DNA of 64,000 nt from Schizochytrium sp. TIO01 (taxonomy: Eukaryota; Protista; Bigyra: Labyrinthulomycetes): contig SMSO01000014.1 of NCBI GenBank assembly GCA_004764695.1, forward strand, positions 5,404,845-5,468,844, in the 5' to 3' direction. Below are positions 7,508 through 48,169 of the stretch, piece after piece (positions within the stretch are counted from its first letter, which is position 1; every line of letters begins with the position of its first letter). The translations under genes were made by a program, and so were the position numbers. The notes below the pieces were generated by a model, which did no database searches, was not told where the DNA came from, and was given only the letters and a program-made list of their open reading frames with translations.

Positions 7508-8123
<616 letters not shown>

Positions 8124-28937: not shown

Positions 28938-29218
28938 TTTCTCTCCCTCCTCTTCTTTCACACTCTCACCTTCGTATCTATAAAAGAGATTTTAAGCTTT
29001 CTTAGTCAGCGGTGACCGTCTGCTTTTGGGAGGAATGAGGAACTAAATAAAAGGGTACCTACGAAAAACCAAAGGTGGAAAGAGGATTTTGATGACGCAT
29101 GGATGACTCATCACTCTCCCCCAATTCAATTTTGTGTGCAGGAAGATCTAGAGGTACTACATTTTCGTTTTATTTGAGTGTTTAGAAAGTTTCCATCGAT
29201 TTCTCTACTAGTAGAGTT

Positions 29219-30114
29219 TTATTGGATACACTGATGAATGCCTTGCTCAAGAAGGTCAAGATCCTTAGTAGCATAAGAATCGACTTGGCGAGGCGCGAAC
29301 TGGTTGCGCTTGGGAGGCTTGGTGCCGTACTTAGCAAAATAGAGTTTGCTCACAGCCATTCCAAACTTGGGAAGTTCCTTGTCGCGTGCAGGGCGTCCCA
29401 GCAATCGCAAAGCAACTTCGGAAATGGTAATTTCTCTTTGTGCAGGCTCAGCGTCCATAATGGTGTGCACAGGCTGGCCACTCTGCATTTGTGAGTGGTC
29501 TCCCCTGATATCCTGAAGCAAGGAATCAGCAATGAAAACGATATTGCGCCGGTAATCCAGGTGGATCTTGTCACGGTCAGACTCGCCACCTCCATAGGCA
29601 GCCATCATTTTGAAGAAATTCTCCGCCTGAATCTGCCTCAACTGGGCTTCTTCGGCATCTCGACGAGCTTTCTTTAATTTGAGCTCCTCTATGCGCTCCT
29701 TCTGAAAAAGTAGAAACTTCTCATACTCCAGTTCCTCCTGCCAGGTCATAGGACGTTTAGTACCTCGGTTCTGTTGCTCCTCCTGCTGATCCTGCTGTTC
29801 TCCCGGATTGCACGTACTGACCAGTAGCAACCTTCACCACAATATCATTCATGGCAAGGAGGAACTCAGCACAGTCCTTATCTAAAATCACGCATATCAT
29901 CAGAAAGTCCGCACATGCGTGCTACTTGGGCTGCGTGGTAGACAAAGCCTGTCGCTCCGATGAAGCGATTCGTATAATGCCAGATGTCCAGCAGGCTGGG
30001 CGAAGCGTTCTTCACCGCGGGATCGTTGAGCGCCGCAGCGCGCATGGCAAGAGAGGGGTTTCCATACTTGGAGTAAACCTGCTGCACTTGCTCAATGTCT
30101 TGATCTCCGCTCAT
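29219..30114 (-). pseudogene. Frameshifted virus-like (BRO/KilA-associated type) DNA-binding protein gene
   Basis: Three frames join: MSGDQDIE...MRDFR, KDCAEFLLAMNDIVVKVATGQYVQ and NPGEQQ...coiled coil...ITISEVALRLLG...FGMAVSKLYFAKYGTKPPKRNQF...VDSY..KDLDLL. The last part resembles a C-terminal domain of giant-virus BRO/KilA-N proteins. Confidence 0.55.
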
Positions 30115-30226
30115 TGTTCTTAGCTAAGTACCTACTACTTTTTCCCTTCTTACTCTGACTATCCTTTAGTTTTCTCAAAAGGCAAAAACCAACCTTTTGA
30201 AGATGCTTTAAAAGAAGAAAAAATGG

Positions 30227-30264
30227 CAAAGAGTTCCCGATTTCTGACTTGAGACCAGGAGGAG
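30227..30264. repeat. 38-bp direct repeat, copy 2
   Basis: Identical to 26881-26918. Confidence 0.95.
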
Positions 30265-31613
30265 AAAAAACTCAGATAATTTTATTCTTCTTTCTTTATC
30301 TTTTCGTTCATTTACCAAAGGGAGAAGCACGGAGTTGGGTAAACACAAATGCTGACTGGCAATTCTGTCAAGACAGTGGGAGCTTTCCACCAAACAAGGA
30401 GATAATTGAGACCTACAACAAGAGCAAAACCAAGGAAGTGTAATAATGCTACCCTATAGGCTCCTACTATCAACTGTGGTAGTCCAAACCATTGATACTG
30501 TAAAACAGAAAGAATCGCGACAACTTGAAGTACCTTGGTAGCCTGCATTTAGGACTATAATAATAAAAGAAACCAAAAGGGGGGTTTCTGTTTTTACTTT
30601 CTTATTTGTGGTTGATTGAAATTAAAAAAAACTTGAAAACGTTTTGAAGTTTACAAAAGAATGAACTACAAAGAAAGAATTTGGTTTCACTCGGAAGACG
30701 ACGATAACGAAGCTAACTAACAATGGGAGATCATCACATGGGGTGTACGCGACAAGTCCCCGGGTACCCCATATGTGTACTTTTGGGCTGTTCCCAGAGG
30801 GGTGTGCACAGAGGGTGCGCACCATCGGGTTGGGGAGAGAAACCGAAACCTGAAAGGCCTCCTTCCCCAAGCACGCCTGGGCTCGAGTTTGGGGAGGGAG
30901 GGACAGCCAGCAAGAGGTGAGCTGGCGGAGGCCGTCGAACGGTACTCCGGCCAGCAGAGATCTTCAGAAGCACCGCCGCTGCCGGTTTGCACCGCGACCT
31001 GGGCGAGAAAGGACTTGCTTGGCTTGGTGAAAGACCCGGTCGCGTCCGACTGCCTTGGTTCTGTTGCTCTTAGAAGGTGTCTTGCTCGCTTTCACCGCTT
31101 GTAATTCCTTCTCAGGCTTTATTCTGGCTGCGAGCCCACCAAGAAAAGGGCTGCTGGGCTCCTTCGCTTTAGTTCCTAAATCTATTGCTGGCGCAACGCC
31201 TCTTGAGCAAGAGCAAGGCGACAACCATTCTTGTATTGCGATACTGCGGAAACGAGCCGCAGCGAGTCGTTGCCTCGATATTTCCGATCGATCGGCGCCA
31301 GTCACCATCTCCACAGCGGCAACCAAGCGGCCGGGTCCTCACGAGTGGAAGAACGTGAGACCCCCCTCGCCTTAAGGCCCAAACCCAAGACGAAGCTTGA
31401 GTTCAAGCAAGCCTAGTCTTGAACTCGATCTTTGCAAGCGAGTCCCAGTAATCAGGAACGAGACCCACTTCGGTGTACACGACCTTGCTGCTCTTAAGAC
31501 CGACCACGGCCGCCTCGCGCCGCTGCTGCTAGCGGCGCGAATAACTTTGCTGCAGTCGGCCTTTGCCGACTCCAGCAGAGTCTCTGCCGCTCGGTTGAGA
31601 CGGCAACAAACCC

Positions 31614-34600
31614 ATGTCAAGAGTGCCATCGCTGTCCTCACTCTGGTCAGCGGCTCACCGTGCGCTGGGCGAAAGGTCTATCGAAGAGGATTCGGAGGAC
31701 GTCAGCAGCGAAGAAGAGGAGGACTTGGATTTGAGTGAGGACGAAGACTTGAAGCAACAAGGGAGTGGGAGCGGGAACGAAAACGTCGAAGGCCTGAGCA
31801 GAGGAATCGCAAGCTCTCAGAGCTTGGATCAAAAGGGAATTGATCAAGAGGCTCCAGAACCTGGCCAAGGGGTATTTGGCCAGCGAGTTCTGGGCCAGGG
31901 GATTCTAGGTCAGACTTTCTTAAGTAGGGGGTTATTTGGGGCATTTCGACGAAAGGAAGAGAGTCCAGAGGTATTAGCTCAAGAAACACTTGGCCAAGGA
32001 GTATTGAATATCGGGGCGCTTGGAAGTGAAGCTTCGAAGCAAATAGGAGAGGAGCAAGAGGAAGAACTGGAACTTGAACTTGAACTTGAAGAAGGAGGAG
32101 AGGACATTGAGCTTGAAGAAGAGCTTGAGGAAGAGGAAGAACTAAGGCTTGAAGAGGAATCAGAAGGCGAAGAAGAGCTAGAACTTGAAGAGGAGCAAGA
32201 CGAACGAGTAGCACTTGCTGCCTGGCGATTGCAAGAAACACGTAGCCAGCTAGAGAGTTTAACTTCTGAAGGTAAACAAGGAGAAAGCGAAGAGTCAGAA
32301 GACGAAAAGGAGTTCTTTTCTGGACAAGAAGAGGAAAGCTATTCTCTCGAGGAAGAAGAAGATCTCTCTGAAAACGAGCGAGAAAGCGAACCCTTAATTC
32401 AAGAATATAGGGGAAACGTAGCTCTTAACGAAGAGGAGTCAGAGGGTGATAGTGACTTTTTTTCCGTGCAAGAAGAAGGAAGCCGTGTGCACGAGGGAGT
32501 AGAGGATCTATCTGAAGAAGAGCAAGAACAGGAGCTTTTAGTTCAGACACTTGGGGGGGTGAACCTAGAGGAAGGCGAAAAGCTCGAAAACCAAGGCCGA
32601 GAGCAAGAACTAGATCAGTCCTTAAACCTTGCAAACTTACAAGACCAAGACAAACAAGAGCTTTTTGACAGCCAACGGCAAGAGCAAGAAGGAGCAGAGC
32701 TAGAAAGCGAGAAAGACCAGTTTTCTGAGCAAGAGGAGGAAAGTTTATCGGACAGGAAAGACACAGGTCTCTCTTCTGGAGAAGAATCTGAAGAAGCAGC
32801 TCAAATATACCAACAAAAAGAAATACTTGAGGTTGATCAACGGCAAGAACTTTCATTCTTCCAGCAGACACAACTTCAAGAGGAGCTTACTTCTAGCAAA
32901 AAGGACCCACAGGAGGAGGTAGAGGAAGGCACTCCAGAGCAACCAAACGAGGATCTCCTTGAGCAAAAGGAGGAAAAGGAGCCCTTCGCACAATCATTTT
33001 GTCACGGCACATCTACTGGACAGGAGGAATATTCTATAGACGAACTCGAGGAAGGCCAAAAGCAACAACTCGGTCAACTGCACAAACTCTATAACTTTGG
33101 GCAAAACCAACACCATATTCAAGAAGACCTTGTCTCAGGCGACGAGGAATCAGAGGAGGAAGAAGGACTTCTTTTCAAGCACGGTCTCTCTGACGACGAA
33201 GAAGAGGTCTCATCTGAGATTGACCAAGAACAAGAAGAGAGACAAGGACCACTACCAAAGGCATATCAAAACTGCATAGCTCCTGAAGACGAAGACAGGG
33301 AAACCCTTATCAAAGACAATCTTGACGAAAATCTTGAGGACGACGACCAAGAGCGAGAACTTGTAAACTTCTCGCAAAACCAAAGTAAAGAGCAGCTCAT
33401 TTCTAGAGACAAAGAGGTACAAGAGCAAGAGAAGAAAACACAGTATTTTTCTCAGGAGCAGGAAAAGGAAAGTATCTTGAACTTGTTCGAGCAAACACAG
33501 GAAGGGAAGTTCCTAGCACAGTCATTTCAGCTCAGTACAACTTTTAGGCAAGGCCAAGAACAGGAAAGCCTCCTACCACTGCAACTCACAGAAAGTGCAG
33601 TTCTAGGCCAGCAAGAACACACAGATTCAGATCTAGAACAAGAAGAGTCTGAGTCAGAGGAAGAGAAAGACTGTGACATTAAAGCTAAAGCAGATCTAGA
33701 CCAAGACTTAGCCTCAAAGTTAGAGGAAGACGAAGGCCTCGACGACAAAGTCCAAACAAACCTAGGCCAAGACCTAGAGCAGGAACAGTCAGAGTCAGAG
33801 CCAGAGGAAGGCATAGACCAAGACCTAGAGGAAGAACTAGAACAGAAACAGGAACAGTCGCACTCAGAGTCAGAGGAGGAAGAAGAAGAAGATCTTGAGC
33901 AACACCTTAACTCAGTGTCAGAAGAAGGATCAGACTACAAAGTTCAAGCAGTTTTAGACCAAGACCTGAACCAAGACCTAAACCAGTTACAGCCGGAGTC
34001 AGAGGAGGAGTCAGAGGAGGAGTCAGAGGAGGAGTCAGAGGAGGAGGAAGAAGAAGATCTCGACAGAAAAGTCCAAGCAGACCTAGACCAAGACCTTAAC
34101 TCAGTGTCAGAGGGAGAAGAAGGACTGGACTACAAAGTTCAAGGAGACTTAGACCAAGACCTAGACCTAGAACAGGAACAGTCACAGTCAGACTCTTTGG
34201 AGGAGGAAGAAGAGGAAGAAGACCTCCACAACAAAGTCCAATCAGACCTAGACCAAACCCAAGACCTAGAACAGGAACAGTCACCGTCAGAGTCAGAAGA
34301 GGAGGAAGAAGAAGACCTAGACATCAAAATCCAAGCAGGCCTTGAGCAAAGCCTAGACTCAGAGGAAGAAAAAGGACTAGATTACAAAGTTCAAGCAGAC
34401 TTAGACCTAGAACAGGAACAGTCAAAGTCACAGTCAGAGTCAGAGTCAGAGGAGGAAGAAGAAGAAGAGGAAGAAGACCTCGACAACAAAGTTCAAGTAG
34501 ACTTAGACCCAGAACAGGAACAGTCAAAGTCACAGTCAGAGTCAGAGTCAGAGTCAGAGGAGGAAGAAGAAGAAGAGGAAGAAGACCTCGAAAACAAAGT

Positions 34601-37600
34601 CCAATCAGACCTTGAGCAAGACCTTATCTCAGCGTCAGAGGAAGAAACAGGACTGAACTACAGCGCTCAAGCAGACCTAGATCAAGACTTAGAAGAGTCA
34701 CAGGAACAGTCACAGTCAGAGGAAGAAGAAGACCTCGACAACAAAGTCCAATCAGACCTTGAGCAAGACCTTAACTCAGTGTCAGAGGAGGAAGAAGACT
34801 ACAAAGTTCAAGCAGACCTAGACCAAGACCTAGAAGAGTCACAGGGACAGTCACAGTCACAGTCAGAGGAGGAAGAGGAAGAAGAGGAAGAAGAGGAAGA
34901 AGACCTCGACAACAAAGTCCAAGCAGACCTTGAGCAAGACCTTAACTCGGTGTCAGAGGAAGGAGAAGACTACAAAGTTCAAGCAGACCTAGACCAAGAC
35001 CTAGAAGAGTCACAGGAACCGTCACAGTCAAAGTCAGAGTCGGAGTCTGAAGAGGAGGAAGAGGAGGAAGACCTCAACACCAAAGGCCACGCAGAACTAG
35101 ACCAAGACCTTAACTCAGTGTCAGAGGAAGGAGAGGGACTAGATTACAAAGTTCAAGCAGACCTAGACCTAGAACAGGAACAGTCAGAGTCAGAGTCAGA
35201 GGAGGAGGAGGAGGAAGAAGAAGACCTTGACAACAAGGTCCGAGCAGACCTTAAGCAAGACCTTAGCTCATTGCCAGAGGAAGAACTAGACAACAAGGTA
35301 CAAGCAGGCCTAGACCAAGACCTAGTCCAAGACCTAGGACAAGAACAGTCGCAGTCAGAGTTGGAGTCAGAGTCAGAGTCAGAGGAAGAGGAAGACCTTG
35401 ACAACAAAGATCTTGAGCAGGAGCAAGAACAGTCAGAGGAAAACCTTGGCGACAAAGATCCAGCAGATCAAGACCTACACTCAGAGCTTGAGAAAGAGGA
35501 AGACCTAGATAACAAAGTCGAAACAAACTTAGATCAAGACATAGAACAGTCACAGTCAGAGTCAAAGTCAGAAGAGGAGCAAGACCTTGGCAACAAAGAC
35601 CTAGCAGATCAACACCTAGAGTTAGAGCAAGAACAGGAACAGCCACAGCCACAGTCAGAGGAGGAGGAGGAGGAAGAAGAAGAAGAAGAAGAGGACCTCG
35701 ACAACAAAGTCCAAGCAGACCTTGAGCAAGACCTTAACTCAGTTTCAGAGGAAGAAGAAGGACTAGACGACAAAGTTCAAGCAGACCTAGAACAGGAGCA
35801 GGAAGAGGAACAATCAGAGTCAGAGTCAGAAGAAGATCTCGGCGAAAACGACCAAGTAGATCAAGACCTAGACTCAGAGCTAGAAAAAGACCAAGGCTTA
35901 GACGACAAAGTCCAAACGAACCTAGATCAAGACCTAGAACAGTCAGAGTCAGAGTTAGAGTCAGAGTCAGAGGAAGACCTCGGCGTCAAAGACCACGCAG
36001 ACCAAGACCGAAACCTAGACTCAGAGTTAGATTTAGAGGAAGACCTAGACGACAAAGTACAAACAAACCTAGACCAAGACCTAACTCAAGAACAGTTAGA
36101 GTCAGAGAAAGAAACAGAGGCCCCCCTTGAGCAAGAGAAGGAAACTTTCTCAATCGATAAAGATAAAACTTTTTCTGAACAGAAACGAGGAGAGCTAGAC
36201 CCTCTATTGCATACATTCCAGCACCAAATTATTCTTGGACAGAGGCAAGAGGAGACGCTTGACAACAAAGTCCAGGTAGATTCAAATCAAGACCGAGACC
36301 TAGACTCAGATCAAGTAGACTCAGAGGAAGAGGAGTCAGAAGAAGAAGAAAGTACCTTGGGCGAAGAACGCGAGGATAATCTCTCTGACCAAGAACAAAG
36401 GAAAGTAGAACCCTGCACACAAGCACTTCAGTGGAAATTAGCTCTTGAGCAAGACCAAGACCAATACCAAGAGGAGTCAGAAAAAGCAGTAGTTCTTTCT
36501 GAGCAAGAAAAGCAGAGCCTTTCGAGTGACGAAGAAGAGGAGCAAGAACTTCAATCAAAACAGCCTTTAGTGCAGTTAGTTTTTGAGGAAGAGGAAGACC
36601 GCAGTACCAAAGTCGAAGGAGACAAAGACCAAAAGGACTCAGAGGAGGAAGAAGAGTTTCTTTCTGAACAAGAAAGACATAGCTTCTCAAGTAGTGAAGA
36701 AAACAACCTTTCTGAACAAGAACAAGACGAGCTAGATTTTCTAGCACAAACCCTTCAGCACCAACTAGCACTTGGACAATATCAAGAAGGGCTCGACAAA
36801 AAATTTGAGGACAGCCAAAGCCAAGACCAAGAGGGATTAGAAGAGGAGCAGGATTCTTTTTCTGAGCCGGGAAGAGAAGAACTAAGTAACCTTGTGCAAG
36901 CGCTCGGTCAGAACGCAGTTCCTGAGGAAGGCCAAGACCAAGACCAAGACCAAGACCAAGACCAAGAGGAATCAGTAAAAGAAGAGTATTTTAGGAATCA
37001 GGGAAAACAAAGTTTCCTGGGTGAAGAAGAGAAAACTTTCTCAGATCAAGAACAGGAAAAAGTAGACCCCCTCGCGCAAGTACTTCAGCACAGAGCATTT
37101 CTTGAGCAAAAAAAGCAGAGTCTTTCAAGTGACGAAGTAGAAGGAGAAGCTCTTTCTGAGCAAGAAGAACAGAGTCTTTCGAGCGACGAAGAGGAAGAGG
37201 AGGTTCTTTCTGAGCAAGAAGAACAGAGTCTTTCACGTGGCGAAGTAGAAGAAGAAGTTCTTTCTGAGCAAGAAGAACAGGGTCTTTCACGTGGCGAAGT
37301 AGAAGAAGAAGTTCTTTCTGAGCAAGAAGAACAGGGTCTTTCGAGCGACGAAGAAGAAGAGGAGGTTCTTTCTGAGCAAGAAAAACCGAGCCTTTCGAGT
37401 GACGAAGTAGAAGAAGAAGTTCTTTCTGAGCAAGAAGAACAGAGTCTTTCGAGTAACGAAGAAGAAGAGGAGGTTCTTTCTAAGCAAGAAAAACCGAGCC
37501 TTTCGGGTAACGAAGTAGAAGGAGAAGCTCTTTCTGAGCAAGAAGAACAGAGTCTTTCGAGTAACGAAGAAGAAGAGGAGGTTCTTTCTAAGCAAGAAAA

Positions 37601-40600
37601 ACCGAGCCTTTCGGGTAACGAAGTAGAAGGAGAAGCTCTTTCTGAGCAAGAAAGACAGAGTCTTTCGAGCGACGAAGAAGAAGAGGAGGTTCTTTCTGAG
37701 CAAGAAGAGCAGAGTCTTTCGAGCGACGAAGAAGAAGAGGAGGTTCTTTCTGAGCAAGAAAGACAGAGTCTTTCGAGTGACGAAGAGGAAGAGGAGGTTC
37801 TTTCTGAGCAAGAAGAACAGAGTCTTTCGAGCGACGAAGAAGAAGAGGAGGTTCTTTCTGAGCAAGAAAAACCGAGCCTTTCGAGTGACGAAGTAGAAGG
37901 AGAAGCTCTTTCTGAGCAAGAAAAACAGAGTCTTTCGAGCGACGAAGAAGAAGAGGAGGTTCTTTCTGAGCAAGACGAACAGAGTCTTTCACGTGTCGAA
38001 GTAGTAGAAGGAGTTCTTTCTGAACAAGAAGAACAGAGTCTTTCACGTGTCGAAGTAGTAGAAGAGGAGGTTCTTTCTGAGCAAGAAGAACAGAGTCTTT
38101 CGAGCGACGAAGAAGAAGAGGAGGTTCTTTCTGAGCAAGAAAAGCCAAGTCTTTCGAGTGACGAAGTAGAAGAGGAAGCTCTTTCTGAGCAAGAAGAACA
38201 GAGTCTTTCGAGCGACGACGAAGAAGAGGAGGTTCTTTCTGAGCAAGAAAAGCCAAGTCTTTCGAGTGACGAAGTAGAAGAGGAAGCTCTTTCTGAGCAA
38301 GAAGAACAGAGTCTTTCGAGCGACGAAGAGGAAGAGGAGGTTCTTTCTGAGCAAGAAGAACAGAGTCTTTCACGTGGCGAAGTAGAAGAGGAAGCCCTTT
38401 CTGAGCAAGAAGAACAGAGTCTTTCGAGCGACGAAGAAGAAGAGGAGGTTCTTTCTGAGCAAGAAAAGCCAAGTCTTTCGAGTGACGAAGTAGAAGAGGA
38501 AGTTCTTTCTGAGCAAGAAGAACAGGGTCTTTTGAGCGACGAAGAAGAAGAGGAGGTTCTTTCTGAGCAAGAAGAACAGAGTCTTTCACGTGGCGAAGTA
38601 GAAGAGGAAGTTCTTTCTGAGCAAGAAGAACAGAGTCTTTCGAGCGACGAAGAGGAAGAGGAGGTTCTTTCTGAGCAAGAAAAGCCAAGTCTTTCACGTG
38701 TCGAAGTAGTAGAAGAAGTTCTTTCTGAGCAAGAAGAACAGAGTCTTTCACGTGTCGAAGTAGTAGAAGAGGAGGTTCTTTCTGAGCAAGAAGAACAGAG
38801 TCTTTCGAGCGACGAAGAAGAAGAGGAGGTTCTTTCTGAGCAAGAAAAGCCAAGTCTTTCGAGTGACGAAGTAGAAGAGGAAGCTCTTTCTGAGCAAGAA
38901 GAGCAGAGTCTTTCGAGCGACGAAGAGGAAGAGGAGGTTCTTTCTGAGCAAGAAAAGCCGAGGCTTTCACGTGACGAAGTAGAAGAGGAAGCTCTTTCTG
39001 AGCAAGGAGAACAGAGTCTTTCGAGCGACGAAGAGGAAGAGGAGGTTCTTTCTGAGCAAGAAGAACAGAGTCTTTCACGTGGCGAAAAAGAGAATCTCTC
39101 TGAGCACGAAGAAGAGCAAGAAGTTCAATCGAAAGAACCTTTAGTTTTCGAACAAGAAGAAAACCTCAGTAAGAGAGTCGAAGCAGACAAGGACCAAAAA
39201 GACTCAGAGGAGGAAGAGGAGCTTCTTTCTGAACAGGAAAGACATAGTTTCTCGAGCGGCGAGGAAGAGGATACCTCTGACCAAGACCAAGGTGAAGAAG
39301 AGGTTGAAGAAGACCAAACCCTTGGATACGAGCATTTGGACTTAAATCAGCAAAGAAGCCTCGGACTCTCCCTTTGGGAACAGGAACACAAGGAGGAAAA
39401 TCTTCTAGCCGAAGAGACACATCAAGCCCTTGATAGAAAGGAAGAGCAAGAATTTCTAGCACAGGTAGTTCAACCCCAGACCTTTCTTAAACAAGAAGAA
39501 AGAGAGGTTCCCGAATTGGGCAAAGCACGAGAAATCGCAAGTTACGAACACGATCAGCAGCTCGTCTTATCTGAAGCCGAAGGAAAAGGTCTGAAGCAAC
39601 AAATCAAATACTTCTCTCAAGACCAAGAGCAAGAGGATCTTGCGTACGAAGAAGTAGAAGAAAAGGTCTTGTTCGCTCATACACTTCTGCAAACCGAAGA
39701 AAGCCACGCTCAGCAGTTTTCAAAACAGCAAAGAGGATTGGATTTTCCTTTCCAACAAAAAAGGCAAGAGCAGTTTTCGAGTCAGCTTCTTAATCATAGA
39801 TCACCGTTAGAAGAAGCTTTCCGCCAACAGCGAGAAGAGGAGGCTGAACTAAAGTCCTCAGAGCTCGAGGAGAAGGAAGAGGAAGAAGAAGGCAAAGTCG
39901 AAGACAAGGGTCGTTTCATCCAAGGCCCCTCCGCGCTAGCGTTTCCCTCTCACCGAGCACAGGAGCAGCCAGTACAGGTCTCAGACCGCTTCTTTCAGCC
40001 CGAGCCTCAGAGCTTTTCTTCCTCCAGCCCCGGGCCCCAGACCCAGCAAGAGTCTTTCCCGACACCTTCGCAAGCCTCTTCCACCCCCCTCCTTGACGCA
40101 GACCTACGCACAGATCCTCCAAAGGACCTCGGCCTCGAGAAGACAGCCTTCGCCCAAGTCACTTCATCCGAGATCGCTGAGGAGCTCCAGGAAGAAGTGA
40201 CCCCACAGCAGGAGCGAAACGATCACAGCGAAGTGTGCGATTGGGAAGACCTCGCCGGAAAAGAACGGGAACAGGAACAAGAACAGCTCACGAGAGAGCT
40301 CGACGAGCACGAGGACTCGGTTTTGGAGGAGAGAGGGATTAGTAGCAGCATGCAGAGGCAGAGATCAAACCTCGAAGGCGGTCCGCTGGCAGCGGCGTTT
40401 GCGGCGAGCCAGGGAACAGCGGGAGAGAGCGTTTCGTCATCGAGGGAGATAGGGCAAAACCTCTTGCGGCAGAGGCAACAGCAATTCATGCAGCAGAGGC
40501 AGCAACGAGGAGACAAAGAGCACTTTGGCAGAGCAACGAATGCAGTATCGGCGGCCTTTGCCTTTAGCAAAGCAGGGGCAGCAGCTAGAGATCAGGAGCG

Positions 40601-43600
40601 CGTGAATAGGCCGGCGCCGGCGTCGACGACGTCGGCGGCGAGCAACACCGCGCAGGGACTCCCGTGGGGGAAACAAAAGTCCAGCGGAGCAACGTCCAAT
40701 AATCAGAACTCCCGAAGCGCTTCTGCGAGGGAACTGAGAAGCCAGGCGGTACCACAAGACGACGAAATCGAGCTTGAACGCGAAGAAGAGGCTCGAGCAA
40801 AGGCAGGTCCACAGCTCACTCCATTGGCACAGGCGTGGCAAGAAGTCGCACAGAAACCATCTACAGGATCTTCTCAGTTCTCGGCAGGTAGAGAATCCAA
40901 GTTTCTGGACCACGTAACACCTCTAAAAGCCGCACCACCATCGCTTACAAGTAGAAGCGGAGCAGAAAAGTCATCTACTAGTGTTACCAAGAGCAGCGAA
41001 CGCCTCGGCAGGCCAGTGTTGCCAAAGGTCATCTCAGGTTCAGCAGCAGACACTACCAAACTCGCCAGCGGTACTCTCCGGGGCAAGAACAAGCCATCTG
41101 CTTCAGAAAGGTGGCTTCAAAATCTTACGGCCAAGCCTTCTTCAGCTGCCACCGACAGGTGGCTTGAGAACCTATCAGCATCTACTCGTCCGAAACCTGT
41201 TCAGACCGAGTCAGCTTCGCCGGAACCATTAGCACAAGCGATTGTACATCACGAAGAGAAGCACCAAACTTCTACAAACCTTAACGCTGTATTGTTGCCT
41301 CGATTCATACCAGCTGCGAGCCCTGTACCAGAGAAGGGTGCCTACACTCCCTCCCCGATACCTGTGGATACACCCCCAGCTATCCCAACTGCTCTAGCAG
41401 CAACTCACGGAAGACTCGAAGCCAGAACTCCATCTCCAGAACCTGACGACGTTCCTGCTGCAACTTACGCTCTAGAAGAAGAATTGTACGCTAGGGACGT
41501 TGAACGGGCACCATCGCCAGATCCCAACTCACTTCCAGCAAAGGTTGTCCCAACACTTGCTCCTGCTCCCACTCGAGCTCCTACAGGAGCGTTGACTGCA
41601 AGAGGAAGGCCAGAGAATCCTTCACACGCAATCAAAGAGCGTCCTGTATTTGGCACTCTTCCTGACGCAGCGATGTTGGGCCCAATTAGCCCTGGAGTGC
41701 AGGAACAGACACGACTTCTTTTGCAGCAACAAAAGGCCAAGGCAGTCTCTGCAATTCGTGCACAACGTGAGCGCGATCCCAGGTCAGAACTTGGTAGCGT
41801 TGGCGCCAATGTACGTATTGTCTGCCATACACGCGAGTATGCACGTCTTCACTTTGCTGCTATTCATGTACCGTGGAGCTGTGTCCGTCTCTTGCGCGAT
41901 GCAGCCGAAAAGGCCGGTGAAGGTCGAGGTGAGCAGGAGATGATGACTGTAGACCTTGGTCGATTGCTCTTAAAGCCAGCGAGTGAGTTGGAGGTTCCTA
42001 AGCCGGTTTTTCAAGAAAACTTTGAGGCCGTCTTTGGCAATACTTTCCGTAATTATTTTATTCCGCTCCTTCACGCTAAGTTTCACAGGAGAGGAGACCT
42101 CACTGGCGATGACATTCCTGATGACATTCGGGCATGCTACAAGTTGTTGGTATTAGCAGAGCGCCTGGGTGCGGAATTGATGCATGATTTGTTCGACCAT
42201 CTGACAACACTTATCAACTCTAGCGTACTTAATGCCATGGCACCTACCAGTACAACAGAAGACATTGTCTCTAGCTCAACTATTCCGTTCCAGCTTGTAA
42301 GTACAAGTCTCAGCTTTGATGTGGCGCCACCTAAAGGTTCACTACTTGAGAAAATTGTGGAGTTGGCGATTGAAACCCTGGTAAAGGGTATACCAACAAG
42401 CCTTGCAGCCCTCCAAGGTCTTGTAGAAATAAGCTGTGAACGCGGCCGGACTGATATGGCCACCACACTTTTTTACCGCTCCATGCAGCAGTGTCTAGGA
42501 TATGCTTCTAAGGCACAAAAGTCTTCAAGGAGTGATGCTGAAACTCTGCTACGCGAGATGGGTGAACAAATGTCCTGGGGACGTCGTGAGGAATCACAAC
42601 TTACAACATTCTTGCACGCACTATCAGGCGCAACCGAAGGTTTTAAAGAGAGCGTTGAGTCTAACGCGACAGCACAAGCTGATGCTGCGACAGATGCGTG
42701 CTTCAGGCAAGGTATCGCTGTGCACAAGATCGGGATGGGGCCGAGTGCTGGCCTCCGGCTACTTCGAACAACAGAAAATGAGATCGAGTGGGTTCGACCT
42801 GGTCGGCGCGAAGTTAAGTCTATCCACCGGAAAGAGATCGTGCAAATTGCAATCGTTCAAACTGACACTAAAGGACGCACCTTTGGAATTGCGCGAAAGA
42901 ATGCTAAGATTGTTACCTTCCGTGTTGATAACTCTCAGGTGCGTGACCAATGTGTTCATGTACTACAGCGATGGTGGCACCCTAATCAACTCTTGGAGCA
43001 GCGCCGAGCTATGTCATATCGTATGCATGACTTGAAAATGAAGACTGGAGGGTTTGCCGCAGAAGCACCAATAGATGAAGACGAAGCTACAGTCACGAGA
43101 CAACCTAGTAGCCAAAGTCTAGTGAGTAATGCTACATCAAGAAGCCTCAGCGTTAACATTGCATCTACCTCTCAGCGTGGTTCGCATCTTGAATCACAGG
43201 CACCTGTAGCTTCCCCAATAACACTTCCCAAAAACAAGAATGCAGAGCAACCCCAACATCAAGAGCAAAGGATGCGCACGAGCCAACAACATCATGTTGA
43301 AACCGAGCATCATGAGCGCGCTATAGAAGAAGAGGAAGAGGAGCACAGCTTTTCTGATGGCAGCCCATACTCCTCCGAAGGTAGCGAGTTCGATGATGAA
43401 GATACAGAAGAGGATGACGGATTTGGTTCTGAGCGTGAACCTGAGCCCCCCGGAACGCCGGTGTCAGAGGCCTTTCACCAAGGAGGCGTCGAAGAGGAGA
43501 AAGAGGATCAAATGGGTTACGCAACGCCCGTGCAAGGTAATCGCATCCCGACAGCAAGCACCACGCCTGGAACTCCAGGCCAGTATGGTCAGAGTCCCAT

Positions 43601-44018
43601 GGTTGGGGCCTTGCCACCACCTCCGGGCGCTCAAGCAAAGACGCTTCCTGCGCGTACTCCAACGCAATTTACTCCTCAAGGTCAAGGATATATGCCGCAA
43701 CAAACATTCACACCCAACCCTGGGATGACACATGTTCAAAACTTCAGTAATTCTATGCATGCACAACCGCAAATGCACAGCGTTAACCCTCATTCCAATC
43801 ATAACCCCAGTCACACGCGAAGCTCCGACGCAGCAGGACTTGGTCTTTTTCAGAAGGGCCAGAGTGCTCGAGAGCTTGGTTCTCATTCAACTCCTCAGCG
43901 TGGCCATGGGTTCTTTTCCAAGATTAACAAGAGTTTTAGGCTTGGGTCCAAGCGTAACCTGATGCCACCTGATCATGGCAATAATGACGGCGGCCATCAG
44001 CGTAGTGACATGCTTTAA
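31614..44018 (+). CDS. Giant acidic repeat protein (4134 aa) with a C-terminal helical region and PH-like domain; alternative start at ATG 40350 (1222 aa)
   Basis: Uninterrupted 12.4-kb frame. The E/D/S/Q-rich N-terminal 2912 aa contain no internal Met. PH-like FRQGIAVHKIG...EIEWVRP...RTFGI...VTFRVDNSQVRDQCVHVLQ at about 42700-42980. Confidence 0.8.
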   Translation: MSRVPSLSSLWSAAHRALGERSIEEDSEDVSSEEEEDLDLSEDEDLKQQGSGSGNENVEGLSRGIASSQSLDQKGIDQEAPEPGQGVFGQRVLGQGILGQTFLSRGLFGAFRRKEESPEVLAQETLGQGVLNIGALGSEASKQIGEEQEEELELELELEEGGEDIELEEELEEEEELRLEEESEGEEELELEEEQDERVALAAWRLQETRSQLESLTSEGKQGESEESEDEKEFFSGQEEESYSLEEEEDLSENERESEPLIQEYRGNVALNEEESEGDSDFFSVQEEGSRVHEGVEDLSEEEQEQELLVQTLGGVNLEEGEKLENQGREQELDQSLNLANLQDQDKQELFDSQRQEQEGAELESEKDQFSEQEEESLSDRKDTGLSSGEESEEAAQIYQQKEILEVDQRQELSFFQQTQLQEELTSSKKDPQEEVEEGTPEQPNEDLLEQKEEKEPFAQSFCHGTSTGQEEYSIDELEEGQKQQLGQLHKLYNFGQNQHHIQEDLVSGDEESEEEEGLLFKHGLSDDEEEVSSEIDQEQEERQGPLPKAYQNCIAPEDEDRETLIKDNLDENLEDDDQERELVNFSQNQSKEQLISRDKEVQEQEKKTQYFSQEQEKESILNLFEQTQEGKFLAQSFQLSTTFRQGQEQESLLPLQLTESAVLGQQEHTDSDLEQEESESEEEKDCDIKAKADLDQDLASKLEEDEGLDDKVQTNLGQDLEQEQSESEPEEGIDQDLEEELEQKQEQSHSESEEEEEEDLEQHLNSVSEEGSDYKVQAVLDQDLNQDLNQLQPESEEESEEESEEESEEEEEEDLDRKVQADLDQDLNSVSEGEEGLDYKVQGDLDQDLDLEQEQSQSDSLEEEEEEEDLHNKVQSDLDQTQDLEQEQSPSESEEEEEEDLDIKIQAGLEQSLDSEEEKGLDYKVQADLDLEQEQSKSQSESESEEEEEEEEEDLDNKVQVDLDPEQEQSKSQSESESESEEEEEEEEEDLENKVQSDLEQDLISASEEETGLNYSAQADLDQDLEESQEQSQSEEEEDLDNKVQSDLEQDLNSVSEEEEDYKVQADLDQDLEESQGQSQSQSEEEEEEEEEEEEDLDNKVQADLEQDLNSVSEEGEDYKVQADLDQDLEESQEPSQSKSESESEEEEEEEDLNTKGHAELDQDLNSVSEEGEGLDYKVQADLDLEQEQSESESEEEEEEEEDLDNKVRADLKQDLSSLPEEELDNKVQAGLDQDLVQDLGQEQSQSELESESESEEEEDLDNKDLEQEQEQSEENLGDKDPADQDLHSELEKEEDLDNKVETNLDQDIEQSQSESKSEEEQDLGNKDLADQHLELEQEQEQPQPQSEEEEEEEEEEEEDLDNKVQADLEQDLNSVSEEEEGLDDKVQADLEQEQEEEQSESESEEDLGENDQVDQDLDSELEKDQGLDDKVQTNLDQDLEQSESELESESEEDLGVKDHADQDRNLDSELDLEEDLDDKVQTNLDQDLTQEQLESEKETEAPLEQEKETFSIDKDKTFSEQKRGELDPLLHTFQHQIILGQRQEETLDNKVQVDSNQDRDLDSDQVDSEEEESEEEESTLGEEREDNLSDQEQRKVEPCTQALQWKLALEQDQDQYQEESEKAVVLSEQEKQSLSSDEEEEQELQSKQPLVQLVFEEEEDRSTKVEGDKDQKDSEEEEEFLSEQERHSFSSSEENNLSEQEQDELDFLAQTLQHQLALGQYQEGLDKKFEDSQSQDQEGLEEEQDSFSEPGREELSNLVQALGQNAVPEEGQDQDQDQDQDQEESVKEEYFRNQGKQSFLGEEEKTFSDQEQEKVDPLAQVLQHRAFLEQKKQSLSSDEVEGEALSEQEEQSLSSDEEEEEVLSEQEEQSLSRGEVEEEVLSEQEEQGLSRGEVEEEVLSEQEEQGLSSDEEEEEVLSEQEKPSLSSDEVEEEVLSEQEEQSLSSNEEEEEVLSKQEKPSLSGNEVEGEALSEQEEQSLSSNEEEEEVLSKQEKPSLSGNEVEGEALSEQERQSLSSDEEEEEVLSEQEEQSLSSDEEEEEVLSEQERQSLSSDEEEEEVLSEQEEQSLSSDEEEEEVLSEQEKPSLSSDEVEGEALSEQEKQSLSSDEEEEEVLSEQDEQSLSRVEVVEGVLSEQEEQSLSRVEVVEEEVLSEQEEQSLSSDEEEEEVLSEQEKPSLSSDEVEEEALSEQEEQSLSSDDEEEEVLSEQEKPSLSSDEVEEEALSEQEEQSLSSDEEEEEVLSEQEEQSLSRGEVEEEALSEQEEQSLSSDEEEEEVLSEQEKPSLSSDEVEEEVLSEQEEQGLLSDEEEEEVLSEQEEQSLSRGEVEEEVLSEQEEQSLSSDEEEEEVLSEQEKPSLSRVEVVEEVLSEQEEQSLSRVEVVEEEVLSEQEEQSLSSDEEEEEVLSEQEKPSLSSDEVEEEALSEQEEQSLSSDEEEEEVLSEQEKPRLSRDEVEEEALSEQGEQSLSSDEEEEEVLSEQEEQSLSRGEKENLSEHEEEQEVQSKEPLVFEQEENLSKRVEADKDQKDSEEEEELLSEQERHSFSSGEEEDTSDQDQGEEEVEEDQTLGYEHLDLNQQRSLGLSLWEQEHKEENLLAEETHQALDRKEEQEFLAQVVQPQTFLKQEEREVPELGKAREIASYEHDQQLVLSEAEGKGLKQQIKYFSQDQEQEDLAYEEVEEKVLFAHTLLQTEESHAQQFSKQQRGLDFPFQQKRQEQFSSQLLNHRSPLEEAFRQQREEEAELKSSELEEKEEEEEGKVEDKGRFIQGPSALAFPSHRAQEQPVQVSDRFFQPEPQSFSSSSPGPQTQQESFPTPSQASSTPLLDADLRTDPPKDLGLEKTAFAQVTSSEIAEELQEEVTPQQERNDHSEVCDWEDLAGKEREQEQEQLTRELDEHEDSVLEERGISSSMQRQRSNLEGGPLAAAFAASQGTAGESVSSSREIGQNLLRQRQQQFMQQRQQRGDKEHFGRATNAVSAAFAFSKAGAAARDQERVNRPAPASTTSAASNTAQGLPWGKQKSSGATSNNQNSRSASARELRSQAVPQDDEIELEREEEARAKAGPQLTPLAQAWQEVAQKPSTGSSQFSAGRESKFLDHVTPLKAAPPSLTSRSGAEKSSTSVTKSSERLGRPVLPKVISGSAADTTKLASGTLRGKNKPSASERWLQNLTAKPSSAATDRWLENLSASTRPKPVQTESASPEPLAQAIVHHEEKHQTSTNLNAVLLPRFIPAASPVPEKGAYTPSPIPVDTPPAIPTALAATHGRLEARTPSPEPDDVPAATYALEEELYARDVERAPSPDPNSLPAKVVPTLAPAPTRAPTGALTARGRPENPSHAIKERPVFGTLPDAAMLGPISPGVQEQTRLLLQQQKAKAVSAIRAQRERDPRSELGSVGANVRIVCHTREYARLHFAAIHVPWSCVRLLRDAAEKAGEGRGEQEMMTVDLGRLLLKPASELEVPKPVFQENFEAVFGNTFRNYFIPLLHAKFHRRGDLTGDDIPDDIRACYKLLVLAERLGAELMHDLFDHLTTLINSSVLNAMAPTSTTEDIVSSSTIPFQLVSTSLSFDVAPPKGSLLEKIVELAIETLVKGIPTSLAALQGLVEISCERGRTDMATTLFYRSMQQCLGYASKAQKSSRSDAETLLREMGEQMSWGRREESQLTTFLHALSGATEGFKESVESNATAQADAATDACFRQGIAVHKIGMGPSAGLRLLRTTENEIEWVRPGRREVKSIHRKEIVQIAIVQTDTKGRTFGIARKNAKIVTFRVDNSQVRDQCVHVLQRWWHPNQLLEQRRAMSYRMHDLKMKTGGFAAEAPIDEDEATVTRQPSSQSLVSNATSRSLSVNIASTSQRGSHLESQAPVASPITLPKNKNAEQPQHQEQRMRTSQQHHVETEHHERAIEEEEEEHSFSDGSPYSSEGSEFDDEDTEEDDGFGSEREPEPPGTPVSEAFHQGGVEEEKEDQMGYATPVQGNRIPTASTTPGTPGQYGQSPMVGALPPPPGAQAKTLPARTPTQFTPQGQGYMPQQTFTPNPGMTHVQNFSNSMHAQPQMHSVNPHSNHNPSHTRSSDAAGLGLFQKGQSARELGSHSTPQRGHGFFSKINKSFRLGSKRNLMPPDHGNNDGGHQRSDML
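33640..36110 (+). repeat. Degenerate coding repeat block A (DLDNKVQADLEQDLNSVSEEE / QSESESEEEE units)
   Basis: Recurrent gacaacaaagtccaagcagacct and tcagagtcagag motifs; reading frame preserved throughout. Confidence 0.9.
37115..39080 (+). repeat. 54-bp (18-aa, VLSEQEEQSLSSDEEEEE) coding tandem array, about 36 copies
   Basis: ctttctgagcaagaa recurs at 37152, 37206, 37260 and onward (period 54, occasionally 57). Confidence 0.95.
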
Positions 44019-44506
44019 GAGTCCCAACAATGCTGACTAAAAGCGATTATTGACACAACTGCTTCTCTAAATTCCCTCTCTTTTTATTATTTCATCAAAA
44101 TATTTTGTCTCTATCGTTTAACACCCAACAGTGTTAATTTAATGATATTATACCTTCATCAAAGCTTGCTTTAGAAGATGGTAGCTAGCATATTAGTAGT
44201 CTATCGATCAATTCCTATTTCGCTGGTTTTCCTGTGTATGTCTAACTACAAACAGACAAATTAGGACATGTATTAAGAATACGGCTATGGCAGAAAGTTC
44301 AACTTTTATCTGAGACTGTGTAGATTAGAGGATCCACTGCTTGTAACACAAGAGAAGAATCATCAAATGGCAATTTATAATTTTGTGGATTAGATTGGAA
44401 AGCAGAGCAATGCTCGTAAGAACCATACAAATAGTGAGTTTGTAAGGGACGTCGATGTATTATTATTAAGTCTGACAGCGAGTAGTATGAATAAATGTTT
44501 GCGGAA

Positions 44507-47500: not shown

Positions 47501-48169
47501 CTGGCTGGACCATTTCAGATAGGCTTGCTTCTCAGCGCGGAGCTTATCAAGTTTTGGTGTAATTTCCTCAGCAAGGAGGTTTTCGATTTCGTCAACCTTG
47601 CTCTGCTTCTGTTCCATCTTGCGTTGTGCGTCCGCCTTTTTTGACTCATACATGCGAGTTCCGACAGCTTCCTCAATCATACCAAGAATCTCAGGCGGTT
47701 TCATGTTAAGAACCTTGGTGATACGACCCTGCATAATGAGAAAGTGCGGGTTGTTGACATTGAGTTGTACAGAGTGGAAAAGGTTTTGGACCTCTTTGGC
47801 CTGGACGCTGCGTCCATTGATGAGGTACTTGTTGCGACCTCCGATGACGATCTGACGGGTTACAGTGATCTCCTCGTCGTTTTCATACCCGACAGGAGCC
47901 CGCTCGCGATCAGAGTTGTCAAAGACGATGGAAACGCTGGCCTTGGTAACACCTGATTGACCCTGCTTGTAGACAAGACCTTGGAGGTTGGCCACGCGGA
48001 CATGGCTGAGCTGTGTAATGCCGAGCACGAAGCAAATGGCATCGAGAATATTGGATTTACCACTGCCATTTAGGCCTGTGATGGCGTTAAATTGAGGGTC
48101 AAAGTCCGGCACGACGGTACGGTTGGCGTACGACTTGAAGCCGTCGATGATAATCTGCTTGATGAACAT
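44507..48169 (-). CDS. SMC2: Structural maintenance of chromosomes protein 2 (condensin)
   Basis: IIIDGFKSYA, FNAITGLNGSGKSNILDAICFVLG, VQLNVNNPHFLIMQGRITKVLNMKP, hinge GTLSGGS, LSELSGGQRSL and KPAPMYILDEVDAALDLSHTQNIG. Confidence 0.98.
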   Translation of the reverse strand: MFIKQIIIDGFKSYANRTVVPDFDPQFNAITGLNGSGKSNILDAICFVLGITQLSHVRVANLQGLVYKQGQSGVTKASVSIVFDNSDRERAPVGYENDEEITVTRQIVIGGRNKYLINGRSVQAKEVQNLFHSVQLNVNNPHFLIMQGRITKVLNMKPPEILGMIEEAVGTRMYESKKADAQRKMEQKQSKVDEIENLLAEEITPKLDKLRAEKQAYLKWSSQNTEMERLQRFCTAHRYHKLYKLVLDTDAKKTEKTEQIEALTAQQETAKGSLASMVENAEQLSSEHIQKLQKRAKELGEREDKTAKVLAKSTSKLDNLKSSFDKLKAKQQALVEQRASFGEQRKAAEDRVAQAKEALQAEDVKYSAAKKALSNAQVALQAANAGLANSTGEDGEGDAQQLTMAEKLVGLRNAAEEAATDVTRQQMKLKHAEKELKTVSAQVKKAKSSNSKAEKELEKYTEAVTSLEAQVSEIDYNPEAAAELEERLDEMTSELVDAKDNAEQLAAQLAAIDFAYSDPSPNFDRSKVKGTVASLVDVLETKNASALEVVAGGKLYQVVVDAVSTGKALLDKGKLKHRVTIIPLDKVNSRVLPDAKIKAASQIAADCNGTAVSALSLVGYEDEVARAMEYVFGTTLVCDSLATARTVTFNKKVMVKSVTLDGDAFDPQGTLSGGSRSNRGSVLLQLSKLRELRMKVDELSQSISEGKKKLAGWDQAAKMYSKVSEKLDLAKHELGLVKERIGSTPFAQLMQKEEQLEKSIGELTEGITMAEQRREKALADAAAMEDEMKDMEAARNNLVAKAQESLQGAKNLFAEAEARYKEVQDRADSAELALEELDQEEASTEENLQASQTQNSTAQEELETLEEEVQQHRMAHSTAATSAEECRGELEACHAELGEIQSAQKKLKTQVHEIELKLKELNMELKNIHHGSSDAAKKAQALKEQHPWIKSEEQFFGKPHTDYDFSAKNPDQAKKRLNELEAAQSKISRNVNKKVMGMIDKAEQEYEDLNRKRSIIEKDRKTIERVIKDLDTKAEQALRSSWEKVNADFGSIFSTLLPGTQAKLEPPEGGTIRDGLEVRVAFGQTWKKSLSELSGGQRSLLALSLILALLLFKPAPMYILDEVDAALDLSHTQNIGQMLRTHFAQSQFIVVSLKEGMFNNANVIFRTKFVEGVSTVARTSNKDHIKRLKNEERAAASKLAEKAEKGKKRARANQNIAVNQ

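Follow-up and report, generated by a model that had tools for sequence, protein, structure and literature searches.

A locus of Schizochytrium sp. TIO01 contains no ATG in any frame over 8.7 kb of its sense strand, and selection against AUG across this stretch is well supported: it is not an artefact of repeats or composition. The stretch lies in a single-exon open reading frame (ORF) of 4,134 amino acids, at positions 31614-44018 (+ strand) of the window, i.e. of the whole 64,000-nucleotide piece of DNA that was analysed. We infer leaky scanning over the 8.7 kb to be the best reading: the avoided event would be initiation by scanning subunits, these would arrive from the cap by leaky scanning, and shorter forms of the protein would exist. 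We therefore put forward, tentatively, a model with one transcription unit, purged of AUG for the scanning 40S subunits, and with nested short forms made from later in-frame AUGs.

Extent of the ATG-free stretch and its reading frame

Around the locus, ATG occurs on the + strand at 30773, 31614, 40350, 40488, 40540 and 41673, and its density is normal past 41673. Only four ATGs thus lie between 30773 and 41673 (10.9 kb), against about 186 at the genome's density: 31614, 40350 and 40488 are in frame, 40540 is not. The longest interval, 31617-40349 (+ strand), has none in any frame, which leaves a gap of 8,736 nt; its 2,911 codons are rich in E, S, Q, L and D and include no Met. It is preceded by an ATG-free 5' leader of 838 nt (30776-31613, + strand; gap of 841 nt, P ~6e-7 at 17 ATG per kb). 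A second ATG-free coding stretch, rich in A, S and P, follows at 40543-41672 (+ strand; gap of 1,133 nt, P ~4e-9 at the genome's density).

These counts agree with a previous, sequence-only reading of the window, which had reported no ATG in 30776-31613 or 31617-40349, no Met from residue 2 to 2912, and sparse ATGs until about 41670 with normal density thereafter. The computed scan found none that had been missed, the translation of 31614-44018 has a single Met in its first 2,912 codons, and the ATG that follows 40540 is that at 41673. In total, the stretch lacks about 42 ATGs out of frame and some 45 Met codons. The same reading had called CAT, the reverse complement, common there. CAT is indeed present and the asymmetry is strand-specific, but with 28 occurrences in 8.7 kb (3.2 per kb, against ~14 per kb across the window) it is depleted 4-fold, and one CAT-free gap of 2.1 kb spans a 54-nt tandem array. 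The asymmetry is therefore one of 28 to 0, not of normal to 0. Avoidance of the motif at the level of DNA is nonetheless rejected, because CAT does occur those 28 times.

The reading frame itself is continuous. Frame 0 runs through 2,912 codons without a stop, while the other two + frames have 163 and 174 (over 30414-41672), and an in-frame TGA at 31596 stands upstream of the first ATG. Tandem arrays make up ~45% of the ATG-free stretch. Those at 33995-36088 (+ strand) all have periods that are multiples of 3, from 6 to 486 nt; in the 54-nt (18-aa) array at 37098-39091 (+ strand), with ~37 copies of the unit LSEQEEQSLSSDEEEEEV, the register shifts by whole codons only. Insertions that distinguish strains, 24 and 6 nt long, keep to multiples of 3 as well. 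Without stops, and with array periods and strain insertions that all preserve the frame, the acidic frame is under coding constraint. The acidic part cannot be read as an intron, since the frame stays open throughout.

Codon choice and the case against chance

The absence of ATG is written into synonymous codon choice. In the acidic stretch GAT is followed by T 11 times, by C 26 times, by A 7 times and never by G, while GAC is followed by G 47 times: the earlier remark that GAT is used solely before codons starting with A, C or T is exact. More broadly, NAT stands before G in 0 of 70 cases and NAC in 72 of 290 (Fisher p = 5e-8), and T-ending codons without a central A precede G normally in the same region (145/451). 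Elsewhere the preference is the opposite, with T used in 60% of NAY|G sites (192/322) in six other ORFs of the genome; GAT accounts for 18% of Asp codons in the stretch and for 59% genome-wide. Codons starting with TG follow an A-ending codon in 0 of 10 cases, though 41% of codons end in A (P = 0.005). In the second ATG-free stretch, 40543-41672, NAT precedes G in 1 of 14 cases and NAC in 9 of 24 (p = 0.06). The choice between T and C thus tracks the next base just where an ATG would arise.

Could the gap be a mere by-product of acidic low complexity, of strong codon bias and of repeat units without ATG being copied? The share of tandem arrays is large, AT-containing trinucleotides are all depleted together with CAT, and when the region's own codons are shuffled synonymously ATG reaches just z = -4.9, with many trinucleotides at |z| 5-9. 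It is the repeats that push them so far; we thus set the shuffle z-score aside and took Fisher tests on repeat-collapsed and on non-array sequence as the main statistic. The depletion survives both. Collapsing the repeats gives p = 4e-7 to 5e-9, and aggressive collapsing to 118 clusters p = 1e-7; in non-array sequence alone, NAT precedes G in 0 of 36 cases and NAC in 56 of 156 (p = 1e-6).

Absolute counts point the same way. The same protein re-encoded with the genome's codon usage has 42.4 ± 4.3 out-of-frame ATGs (minimum 26 in 2,000 trials), and the synonymous shuffle leaves 16.4 ± 3.2 (minimum 6 in 5,000 trials). ATG is the sole trinucleotide at zero, whereas the other depleted ones remain at 40-50% of expectation; the longest gap of every other trinucleotide is at most 2.7 kb and falls within a single array, the 54-nt one. 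Nor does an acidic composition exclude methionine, as E/D/S/Q-rich windows in other ORFs keep 1.6% Met (8/500). Nine other ORFs of at least 1,000 aa have 14-24 ATG per kb and ATG gaps of at most 378 nt. A search of the acidic part against its own genome matched only itself. Strain SNPs create an ATG in 0 of 24 cases, with just ~1 expected, so that this comparison is without power. Altogether, an origin without selection on AUG is largely refuted, and we give it hardly any credence. All of this supports the selection that had been inferred earlier, on the RNA and against AUG whatever its frame: it acts at synonymous sites, on ATG specifically and not on T|G junctions in general, and outlasts the collapsing of repeats.

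Start codons, leaders and the conserved module

The ATG that opens the ORF (31614-31616, + strand) has the weak context cccATGt, with C at -3 and T at +4. At 35 other likely starts of the genome the -3 base is A in 24 and C in just 4, which upholds the earlier description of this start as weak; as those 4 are ordinary starts, the weak context is not special in itself. The second ATG (40350-40352, + strand) is in frame and would give a form of 1,222 aa. Its context, cagcATGc, has the A at -3 that had been pointed out, together with C at -4 and C at -1, and matches the local consensus. A third, also in frame, stands at 40488-40490 (+ strand); T at -3 makes its context weak. Just one ATG in the 10.9 kb is out of frame; its context is weak too, and it opens an ORF of 21 codons (40540-40605, + strand). 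Finally, the in-frame ATG at 41673-41675 (+ strand), with G at -3, lies 41 residues ahead of a conserved domain, and a homolog-like form of 781 aa would start here. The locus combines several features that leaky scanning calls for: a suboptimal first AUG, no AUG between the starts, and a downstream AUG in frame and in good context.

The module conserved in labyrinthulomycete and other protist homologs extends over 41787-43034 (+ strand): a helical domain comes first, then a PH-like one (about 42684-42992). The homologs are 450-717 aa long, one of them a 717-aa protein of Mucochytrium quahogii (E = 1.7e-93). Their own starts lie 15 to 190 residues ahead of this block, and the alignment opens just past the ATG at 41673, which makes the acidic part an extension specific to the lineage. 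A single, distant relative from one metagenome scan, with normal ATG density and in-frame stops upstream, tells nothing more of the extension than that it is lineage-specific. The 1,222-aa form had been proposed as the target of downstream initiation. Its start is in frame and in consensus context, as claimed, but the ATG-poor zone continues to 41673, 41 residues before the part that the homologs conserve; the 781-aa form is therefore as likely a target.

A structure model of the conserved module, at pLDDT 70-93, supports the PH domain proposed for the C-terminal part, at least as a PH-like fold. It predicts a seven-stranded β sandwich and a C-terminal helix (strands 348-417 and helix 421-435 in the numbering of the 781-aa form; pLDDT 81-91), which PH domains match with Z of 12-13 and rmsd of 2.2-2.9 Å over 91-97 residues, at a Foldseek probability of 1.0. 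Chains with DH-PH domains head the Foldseek list, yet at TM 0.1-0.27 and rmsd of ~20 Å, and realignment took their PH part only. Pfam searches with three pieces of the protein gave no family at E <= 0.01, the PH profile included, and no RhoGEF match. Leads to melted/VEPH1-like proteins in the Atlas score 0.79, below trust level. A protein search with the 1,222-aa form, limited to candidates of 0.55-1.75 times its length, had no match at E <= 0.001, and an Rfam search of 30000-44500 returned no family.

It is conceivable, though improbable in our view, that the 4,134-aa protein is the sole functional product, with AUGs purged against harmful out-of-frame peptides or truncated acidic fragments and with the in-frame ATGs at 40350, 40488 and 41673 being incidental. 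AUG avoidance as such is what this would produce, no short form has been seen so far, and a frame kept open for 2,912 codons means that the long form matters. However, a better context at 31614 would be far cheaper than the loss of ~90 ATGs, and ordinary genes, among them an ORF of 4,831 aa, tolerate 14-24 ATG per kb straight after their start. In-frame Met codons, which would merely yield shortened copies, are absent too. The three later in-frame ATGs are joined by just one out of frame (40540), the first of the three has a consensus context, and 41673 coincides with the start region of the homologs.

Long ATG-free leaders are found across the genome. In a 200-kb sample, most gaps of 600-1,300 nt without an ATG run up to the ATG with which a long ORF starts, and the gap before likely starts has a median of 254 nt, against a mean ATG spacing of 58 nt; long scanned leaders are therefore normal here. 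The 8.7-kb gap is unmatched in the nine ORFs of at least 1,000 aa, but ATG-free leaders of 0.6-1.3 kb are ordinary. The locus thus marks the far end of a habit seen across the genome and does not stand alone. With the other kilobase leaders it has in common that one strand is devoid of ATG between the 5' end of the RNA and a start codon; those leaders are mostly non-coding, whereas its own track runs on through 8.7 kb of open frame. A smaller parallel, at C13:3049882-3051061, is an open ATG-free extension of 392 codons.

Transcription appears to take in the leader and the beginning of the acidic ORF, judging from runs that we guess to be RNA: they are assembled contigs, in which true 5' ends and continuity across the arrays are not visible. 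Three of them start at 30750 (X7), 31044 (X6) and 31116 (X1), bridge 31614 and continue into the ORF. Together, the RNA-like runs cover 30750-33990, so that coverage starts where the ATG-free zone starts, and they skip the intergenic DNA upstream (28990-29657 and 29992-30492, both covered by a DNA run, X19). Of the words sampled from 39200-44000, a share of 0.79-0.89 is found in such runs as well.

Proposed mechanism and its relation to known systems

In the model that we favour, the locus would be a single transcription unit, AUG-free but for the few starts above from its 5' end (about 30.75-30.8 kb) to 41673; the transcribed part would be kept so because scanning 40S subunits pass through it. 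The genome's rule of AUG-free kilobase leaders would here have come to govern 2,912 translated codons as well, an N-terminal extension that is an acidic, largely repetitive and lineage-specific addition to a conserved helical-plus-PH protein. A fraction of the subunits would initiate at the weak AUG 31614 and yield the 4,134-aa protein. Those that bypass it would meet as their next AUG the in-frame consensus one at 40350, and beyond it the weak in-frame 40488, the out-of-frame mini-ORF at 40540 and the in-frame 41673. The nested short forms, of 1,222, 1,176 and 781 aa, would consist of the conserved module freed of the acidic rod. Each ATG placed after 31614 would intercept passing subunits equally, and the total absence of ATG from the leader onward fits passage from the 5' end.

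That 40S subunits routinely travel ~9-11 kb from the cap, through a translated ORF of 2,912 codons, to in-frame AUGs is possible, if rather doubtful. They would need to queue behind elongating ribosomes, and cap-tethered scanning models predict long blockage of the mRNA at such a distance. The range of 43S scanning, cap tethering and the sharing of an mRNA with elongating ribosomes are all debated. Natural test cases, to our knowledge, extend over hundreds of bases, ~2.5 kb at most, and we know of no documented natural scanning distance that 8.7 kb does not exceed several-fold.

The same selection against AUG could be served by another route, which we consider unlikely. Subunits would load on 5'-truncated mRNAs, which dispersed internal transcription starts or the recapping of decay products would supply, or enter the purine-rich RNA directly, and use the first AUG downstream (40350, 40488 or 41673), the full 8.7 kb never being scanned. 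This would dispense with a distance far outside known scanning tracks. The ATG-free region is 64% purine, and its predicted structure per 120 nt, -19 to -28 kcal/mol against -27 to -28 in other coding sequence, makes the RNA only slightly less structured, a faint hint of an exceptionally unstructured track. The sparseness of ATG past 40350, to 41673, would also suit scattered starts, and the contigs are compatible with shorter RNAs. Yet with scattered entry each ATG would intercept few subunits and be weakly selected against, whereas ~42 out-of-frame ATGs and all Met codons are gone. Moreover, the ATG-free zone opens with the leader, where RNA-like coverage opens, as passage from the 5' end predicts, and the genome demonstrably keeps kilobase leaders ATG-free.

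Dicistronic mRNAs of Drosophila offer a precedent for scanning from the cap. In stoned (stoned A/stoned B) and Snapin, the first AUG is suboptimal, the upstream ORF has no internal AUG, and leaky scanning that depends on context gives access to the downstream start (PMC2978622, PMC11892635). The locus resembles them in its weak first AUG and AUG-free upstream coding sequence, but those mRNAs have two cistrons for different proteins, whereas the locus is one uninterrupted ORF with nested candidate starts in frame. The two separate ORFs of a dicistronic gene are not found: 31614-44018 is a single ORF, and all candidate starts but one are in frame. The AUG-free cistron of stoned A is reportedly ~2.5 kb long, against 8.7 kb here, or 10.9 kb with just four ATGs.

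At bicistronic loci of green algae (Chlamydomonas, Auxenochlorella), AUG is depleted in ORF 1 and between the ORFs, ORF 1 has a weak Kozak-like context and ORF 2 a strong one, and reporters show leaky scanning (PMC11892635). In that other lineage, ORF 1 is typically short and two distinct proteins are made; at the locus AUG is missing altogether across thousands of codons, and it is synonymous sites that give the evidence. Genes with in-frame alternative initiation, making extended and short isoforms, share with the locus a weak upstream start, an AUG-free interval and a stronger downstream start in frame, on one mRNA (at the locus a predicted one). Known intervals between such starts measure tens or hundreds of nucleotides; at the locus 2,912 codons, most of the gene, lie between them.

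Plant pararetroviruses of the rice tungro bacilliform virus type have consecutive ORFs nearly without internal AUGs, which let scanning subunits reach downstream starts. Their RNAs are viral, with separate ORFs and a span of ~1 kb, and use both leaky scanning and shunting. Both these and the locus are AUG-poor translated tracks, but the latter is cellular, a single ORF, and 8.7 kb long. Polycistronic RNAs of this type are among the subjects of a review (PMC5902531). Our literature search turned up no multi-kilobase coding sequence reported to be free of ATG.

If the proposed mechanism is true, this scanning track would be several-fold longer than any other known in nature, and a giant coding sequence would be shaped at every synonymous site by initiation far downstream. 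The signature, missing ATGs and codons that flip where an ATG would arise, means that something reads 8.7-10.9 kb of RNA for AUGs. A long coding sequence can then be constrained as a leader, for which gene finders and dN/dS analyses have no model. The locus also suggests that very long AUG-free leaders are a habit of the whole genome in this lineage; thraustochytrids can be cultivated and transformed, hence the mechanism is open to direct test.

Count and coding status of the ATG-free stretch

By direct count, + strand ATGs around the locus fall at 30773, 31614, 40350, 40488, 40540 and 41673, and normal density resumes past the last of these. The gaps between them measure 841 nt (30773-31614), 8,736 nt (31614-40350) and 1,133 nt (40540-41673); the claim of the sequence-only reading that no + strand ATG lies in 30776-31613 or 31617-40349 is borne out. 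At the genome density of 17 ATGs per kb per strand, ~186 would be expected in 30776-41672, where four are found. Three share the frame of the 4,134-aa ORF (31614-44018, +); the exception, at 40540, opens a 21-codon ORF. Codons 1-2,912 of the giant ORF hold a single Met, the initiator. The reported rule that GAC is used before G, and GAT before A, C or T only, is exact: none of the 44 GAT codons stands before G, the next base being A, C or T each time, while GAC precedes G 47 times. Calling CAT common in the same stretch is an overstatement: its 28 copies amount to 3.2 per kb, against ~14 elsewhere, and a CAT-free gap of 2.1 kb spans the large array of 54-nt units.

The ATG-free stretch is coding. 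From 31614 onward, frame 0 contains no stop, and the other two + frames contain 163 and 174 over 30414-41672. An in-frame TGA at 31596 places the ORF start at or adjoining 31614. Tandem arrays occupy ~45% of the stretch: several with periods from 6 to 486 nt (33995-36088, +) and one with ~37 copies of the 54-nt unit (37098-39091, +). Every array period is a multiple of three, and register shifts within the 54-nt array are whole codons. A contig of X7, an RNA-like run with another strain label, has insertions at 33885 and 33919, where the arrays begin, of 24 and 6 nt, both in frame; repeat copy number differs among strains with the frame intact. Ten of the 19 strain SNPs listed within the ORF fall at third codon positions. 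Two ORFs of 496 and 228 aa lie antisense to the 54-nt array (37588-39078 and 37287-37973, −); these by-products of a repeat unit without stops in those frames do not count as evidence of genes.

Selection against AUG

Plain synonymous shuffling yielded 16.4 ± 3.2 out-of-frame ATGs, with a minimum of 6 in 5,000 trials, but this test is spoiled by the repeats: many other trinucleotides also reach |z| of 5-9. We therefore rely on tests free of the assumption that codon pairs are independent. As an internal control within the ATG-free coding stretch, 0 of 70 NAT codons stand before G, against 72 of 290 NAC codons. Where the middle base is not A, NNT and NNC precede G equally often (145/451 and 92/248), so it is ATG that is avoided and not T before G. 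All 360 sites of either codon type (NAY) were then clustered on their 33-nt context at three stringencies, giving 260, 170 and 118 clusters. The depletion persisted in this check, which had been named beforehand together with the codon shuffles: NAT and NAC preceded G in 0/46 versus 68/218, 0/40 versus 60/137 and 0/31 versus 43/91 cases (p = 4e-7 to 5e-9). Non-array sequence alone (31617-33992, 36090-37097 and 39093-40349) gave 0/36 versus 56/156 (p = 1e-6). In the third phase, A-ending codons, which make up 41% of all codons, never occur at the 10 positions before a TG-starting codon (P = 0.005).

External comparisons were made as well. In six other ORFs, T is the third base at 192 of 322 NAY sites before G (60%), and GAT accounts for 18% of Asp codons in the stretch versus 59% genome-wide. 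Written with genome codon usage, the same protein would contain 42.4 ± 4.3 out-of-frame ATGs, and none of 2,000 such encodings had fewer than 26. Met makes up 1.6% of E/D/S/Q-rich windows of other ORFs (8/500, a small sample), from which ~45 Met codons would be expected in the stretch. For other trinucleotides in the window, the longest gaps never exceed 2.7 kb and are all located on the 54-nt array. Nine other ORFs of at least 1,000 aa, one of them of 4,831 aa, contain 14-24 ATGs per kb, and their longest gaps are 167-378 nt. That the absence of ATG is an artefact of composition, codon bias or repeats is rejected by the internal control and by the collapsed, non-array and external-ORF tests, and we consider it highly improbable; selection against AUG at the locus is close to certain.

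Start codons, RNA-like coverage and candidate isoforms

Over 28990-33990 we compared one DNA run (X19) with three RNA-like runs (X1, X6 and X7), the latter being assembled contigs whose RNA nature is guessed and from which 5' ends and continuity across arrays are not readable. The DNA run covers 29 of 30 bins; the RNA-like runs leave 28990-29657 and 29992-30492 uncovered. Their coverage starts at 30750 (X7), 31044 (X6) and 31116 (X1), close to the onset of the ATG-free zone at 30776, and extends to 32312, 33417 and 33990, with contigs bridging ATG 31614. Of the words sampled from 39200-44000, a fraction of 0.79-0.89 is found in the RNA-like runs, from which it can be calculated that they contain no less than about half of the 1.15 kb directly upstream of 40350. 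X6 and X19, both from other strains, share a joint at 29852-30528 where 277 other letters replace 675 nt: a structural strain difference in an island upstream of the giant gene.

ATG 31614 has C at -3, found in 4 of 35 likely starts, and ATG 40350 has C at -4, A at -3 and C at -1, the local consensus. The earlier description of a weak first start and a downstream one with A at -3 agrees with this comparison. In the shortest account, scanning 40S subunits would read the RNA from its 5' end to 41673, and any AUG there would be used. Subunits bypassing 31614 would start at 40350, 8.7 kb downstream; some would continue to 40488, or reach 41673 by passing the 21-codon mini-ORF or resuming after it. 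The products, alongside the 4,134-aa form, would be short forms of 1,222, 1,176 and 781 aa. Nested isoforms fed by cap-dependent leaky scanning are our favoured but tentative reading of the locus. Against it, the distance is without precedent, subunits scanning the RNA would need to follow behind elongating ribosomes, and the RNA of the stretch is just slightly less structured than ordinary coding sequence.

The same AUG selection could instead be served by truncated mRNAs or internal loading, which we find rather doubtful: with scattered entry, each ATG would be under weak selection only, and a total absence that begins at the leader is better accounted for by passage from the 5' end. A purely protective avoidance of AUG accounts for it less well, too: improving the context of 31614 would cost less, and Met codons in frame would do no harm, making protection alone improbable.

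A search with the last 1,199 residues against 1.84 billion representative proteins found 15 relatives, all aligning to 41787-43034 and onward and all without the acidic part. Of the informative ones, the best is a Mucochytrium quahogii protein of 717 aa (45% identity), also from a thraustochytrid; apart from it and a 168-aa fragment 99% identical to the query, the relatives are unnamed and 224-606 aa long. Several relatives start just ~15 residues ahead of the conserved block, and the in-frame ATG 41673 lies 41 residues ahead of it. From this alignment, the ancestral protein appears to be the 781-aa form, and all that lies upstream a lineage-specific addition. Residues 45-460 of the 781-aa form are confidently modelled, from an alignment of 8 sequences, as a helical domain with a PH-like domain after it. 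The matches to PH domains have Z ~13, rmsd of 2.2-2.9 Å over 91-97 residues and a Foldseek probability of 1.0, in keeping with the PH domain originally assigned to this part. A DH-PH (RhoGEF) identity of the helical part is not established, and Atlas leads to melted/VEPH1-type PH proteins score 0.79 only.

Known systems and long leaders elsewhere in the genome

A weak first start, an upstream ORF depleted of AUG and a stronger start downstream occur together in Drosophila stoned and Snapin and in green-algal bicistronic genes (PMC2978622, PMC11892635), and likewise in plant pararetroviruses (reviewed in PMC5902531). The giant gene follows the same logic. As a single ORF whose starts share one frame, it falls outside the dicistronic class; by its sequence features it belongs with leaky-scanning in-frame isoform genes. 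The AUG-free stretch of stoned A is reportedly ~2.5 kb, versus 8.7 kb here, or 10.9 kb with four ATGs. New here are this scale, the clean proof from synonymous sites and the proposed use of a translated giant extension as the scanning track. Literature text searches for multi-kilobase ATG-free coding sequence found no report.

Further + strand ATG-free gaps in the window measure 789 nt (7445-8234), 518 nt (55023-55541) and 669 nt (60385-61054). The last two end at start ATGs of 1,371- and 346-aa ORFs, respectively, and are likely long ATG-free leaders. At 46001-47000, antisense to a 1,220-aa ORF (44507-48169, −), the + strand has 2 ATG versus 21 CAT, a local antisense depletion of ATG.

In the source thraustochytrid assembly (64 Mb, 37 contigs), we examined 200 kb of the same chromosome (G000:C13:3000001-3200000), both strands, or 400 kb of strand. 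At C13:3049882-3051061, the frame of a C2-FKBP-SAM gene is open for 392 codons before its first ATG, within an ATG-free gap of 1,321 nt; stops number 12 and 22 in the other frames, and NAT precedes G in 0/8 cases versus 19/49 for NAC. It is a smaller relative of the giant-gene case, and because its extension lacks an ATG, it points to initiation at a non-AUG codon or to an exon further upstream. The sample contains 16 ATG-free gaps of 560-1,321 nt, against ~0.4 by chance, and in seven cases the gap closes with the initial ATG of an ORF (362-4,831 aa). Ahead of 36 likely start codons, the stretch without ATG has a median length of 254 nt, versus a mean ATG spacing of 58 nt. This excess of long gaps, together with the median before starts, indicates that the organism strictly excludes upstream AUGs from its long leaders.
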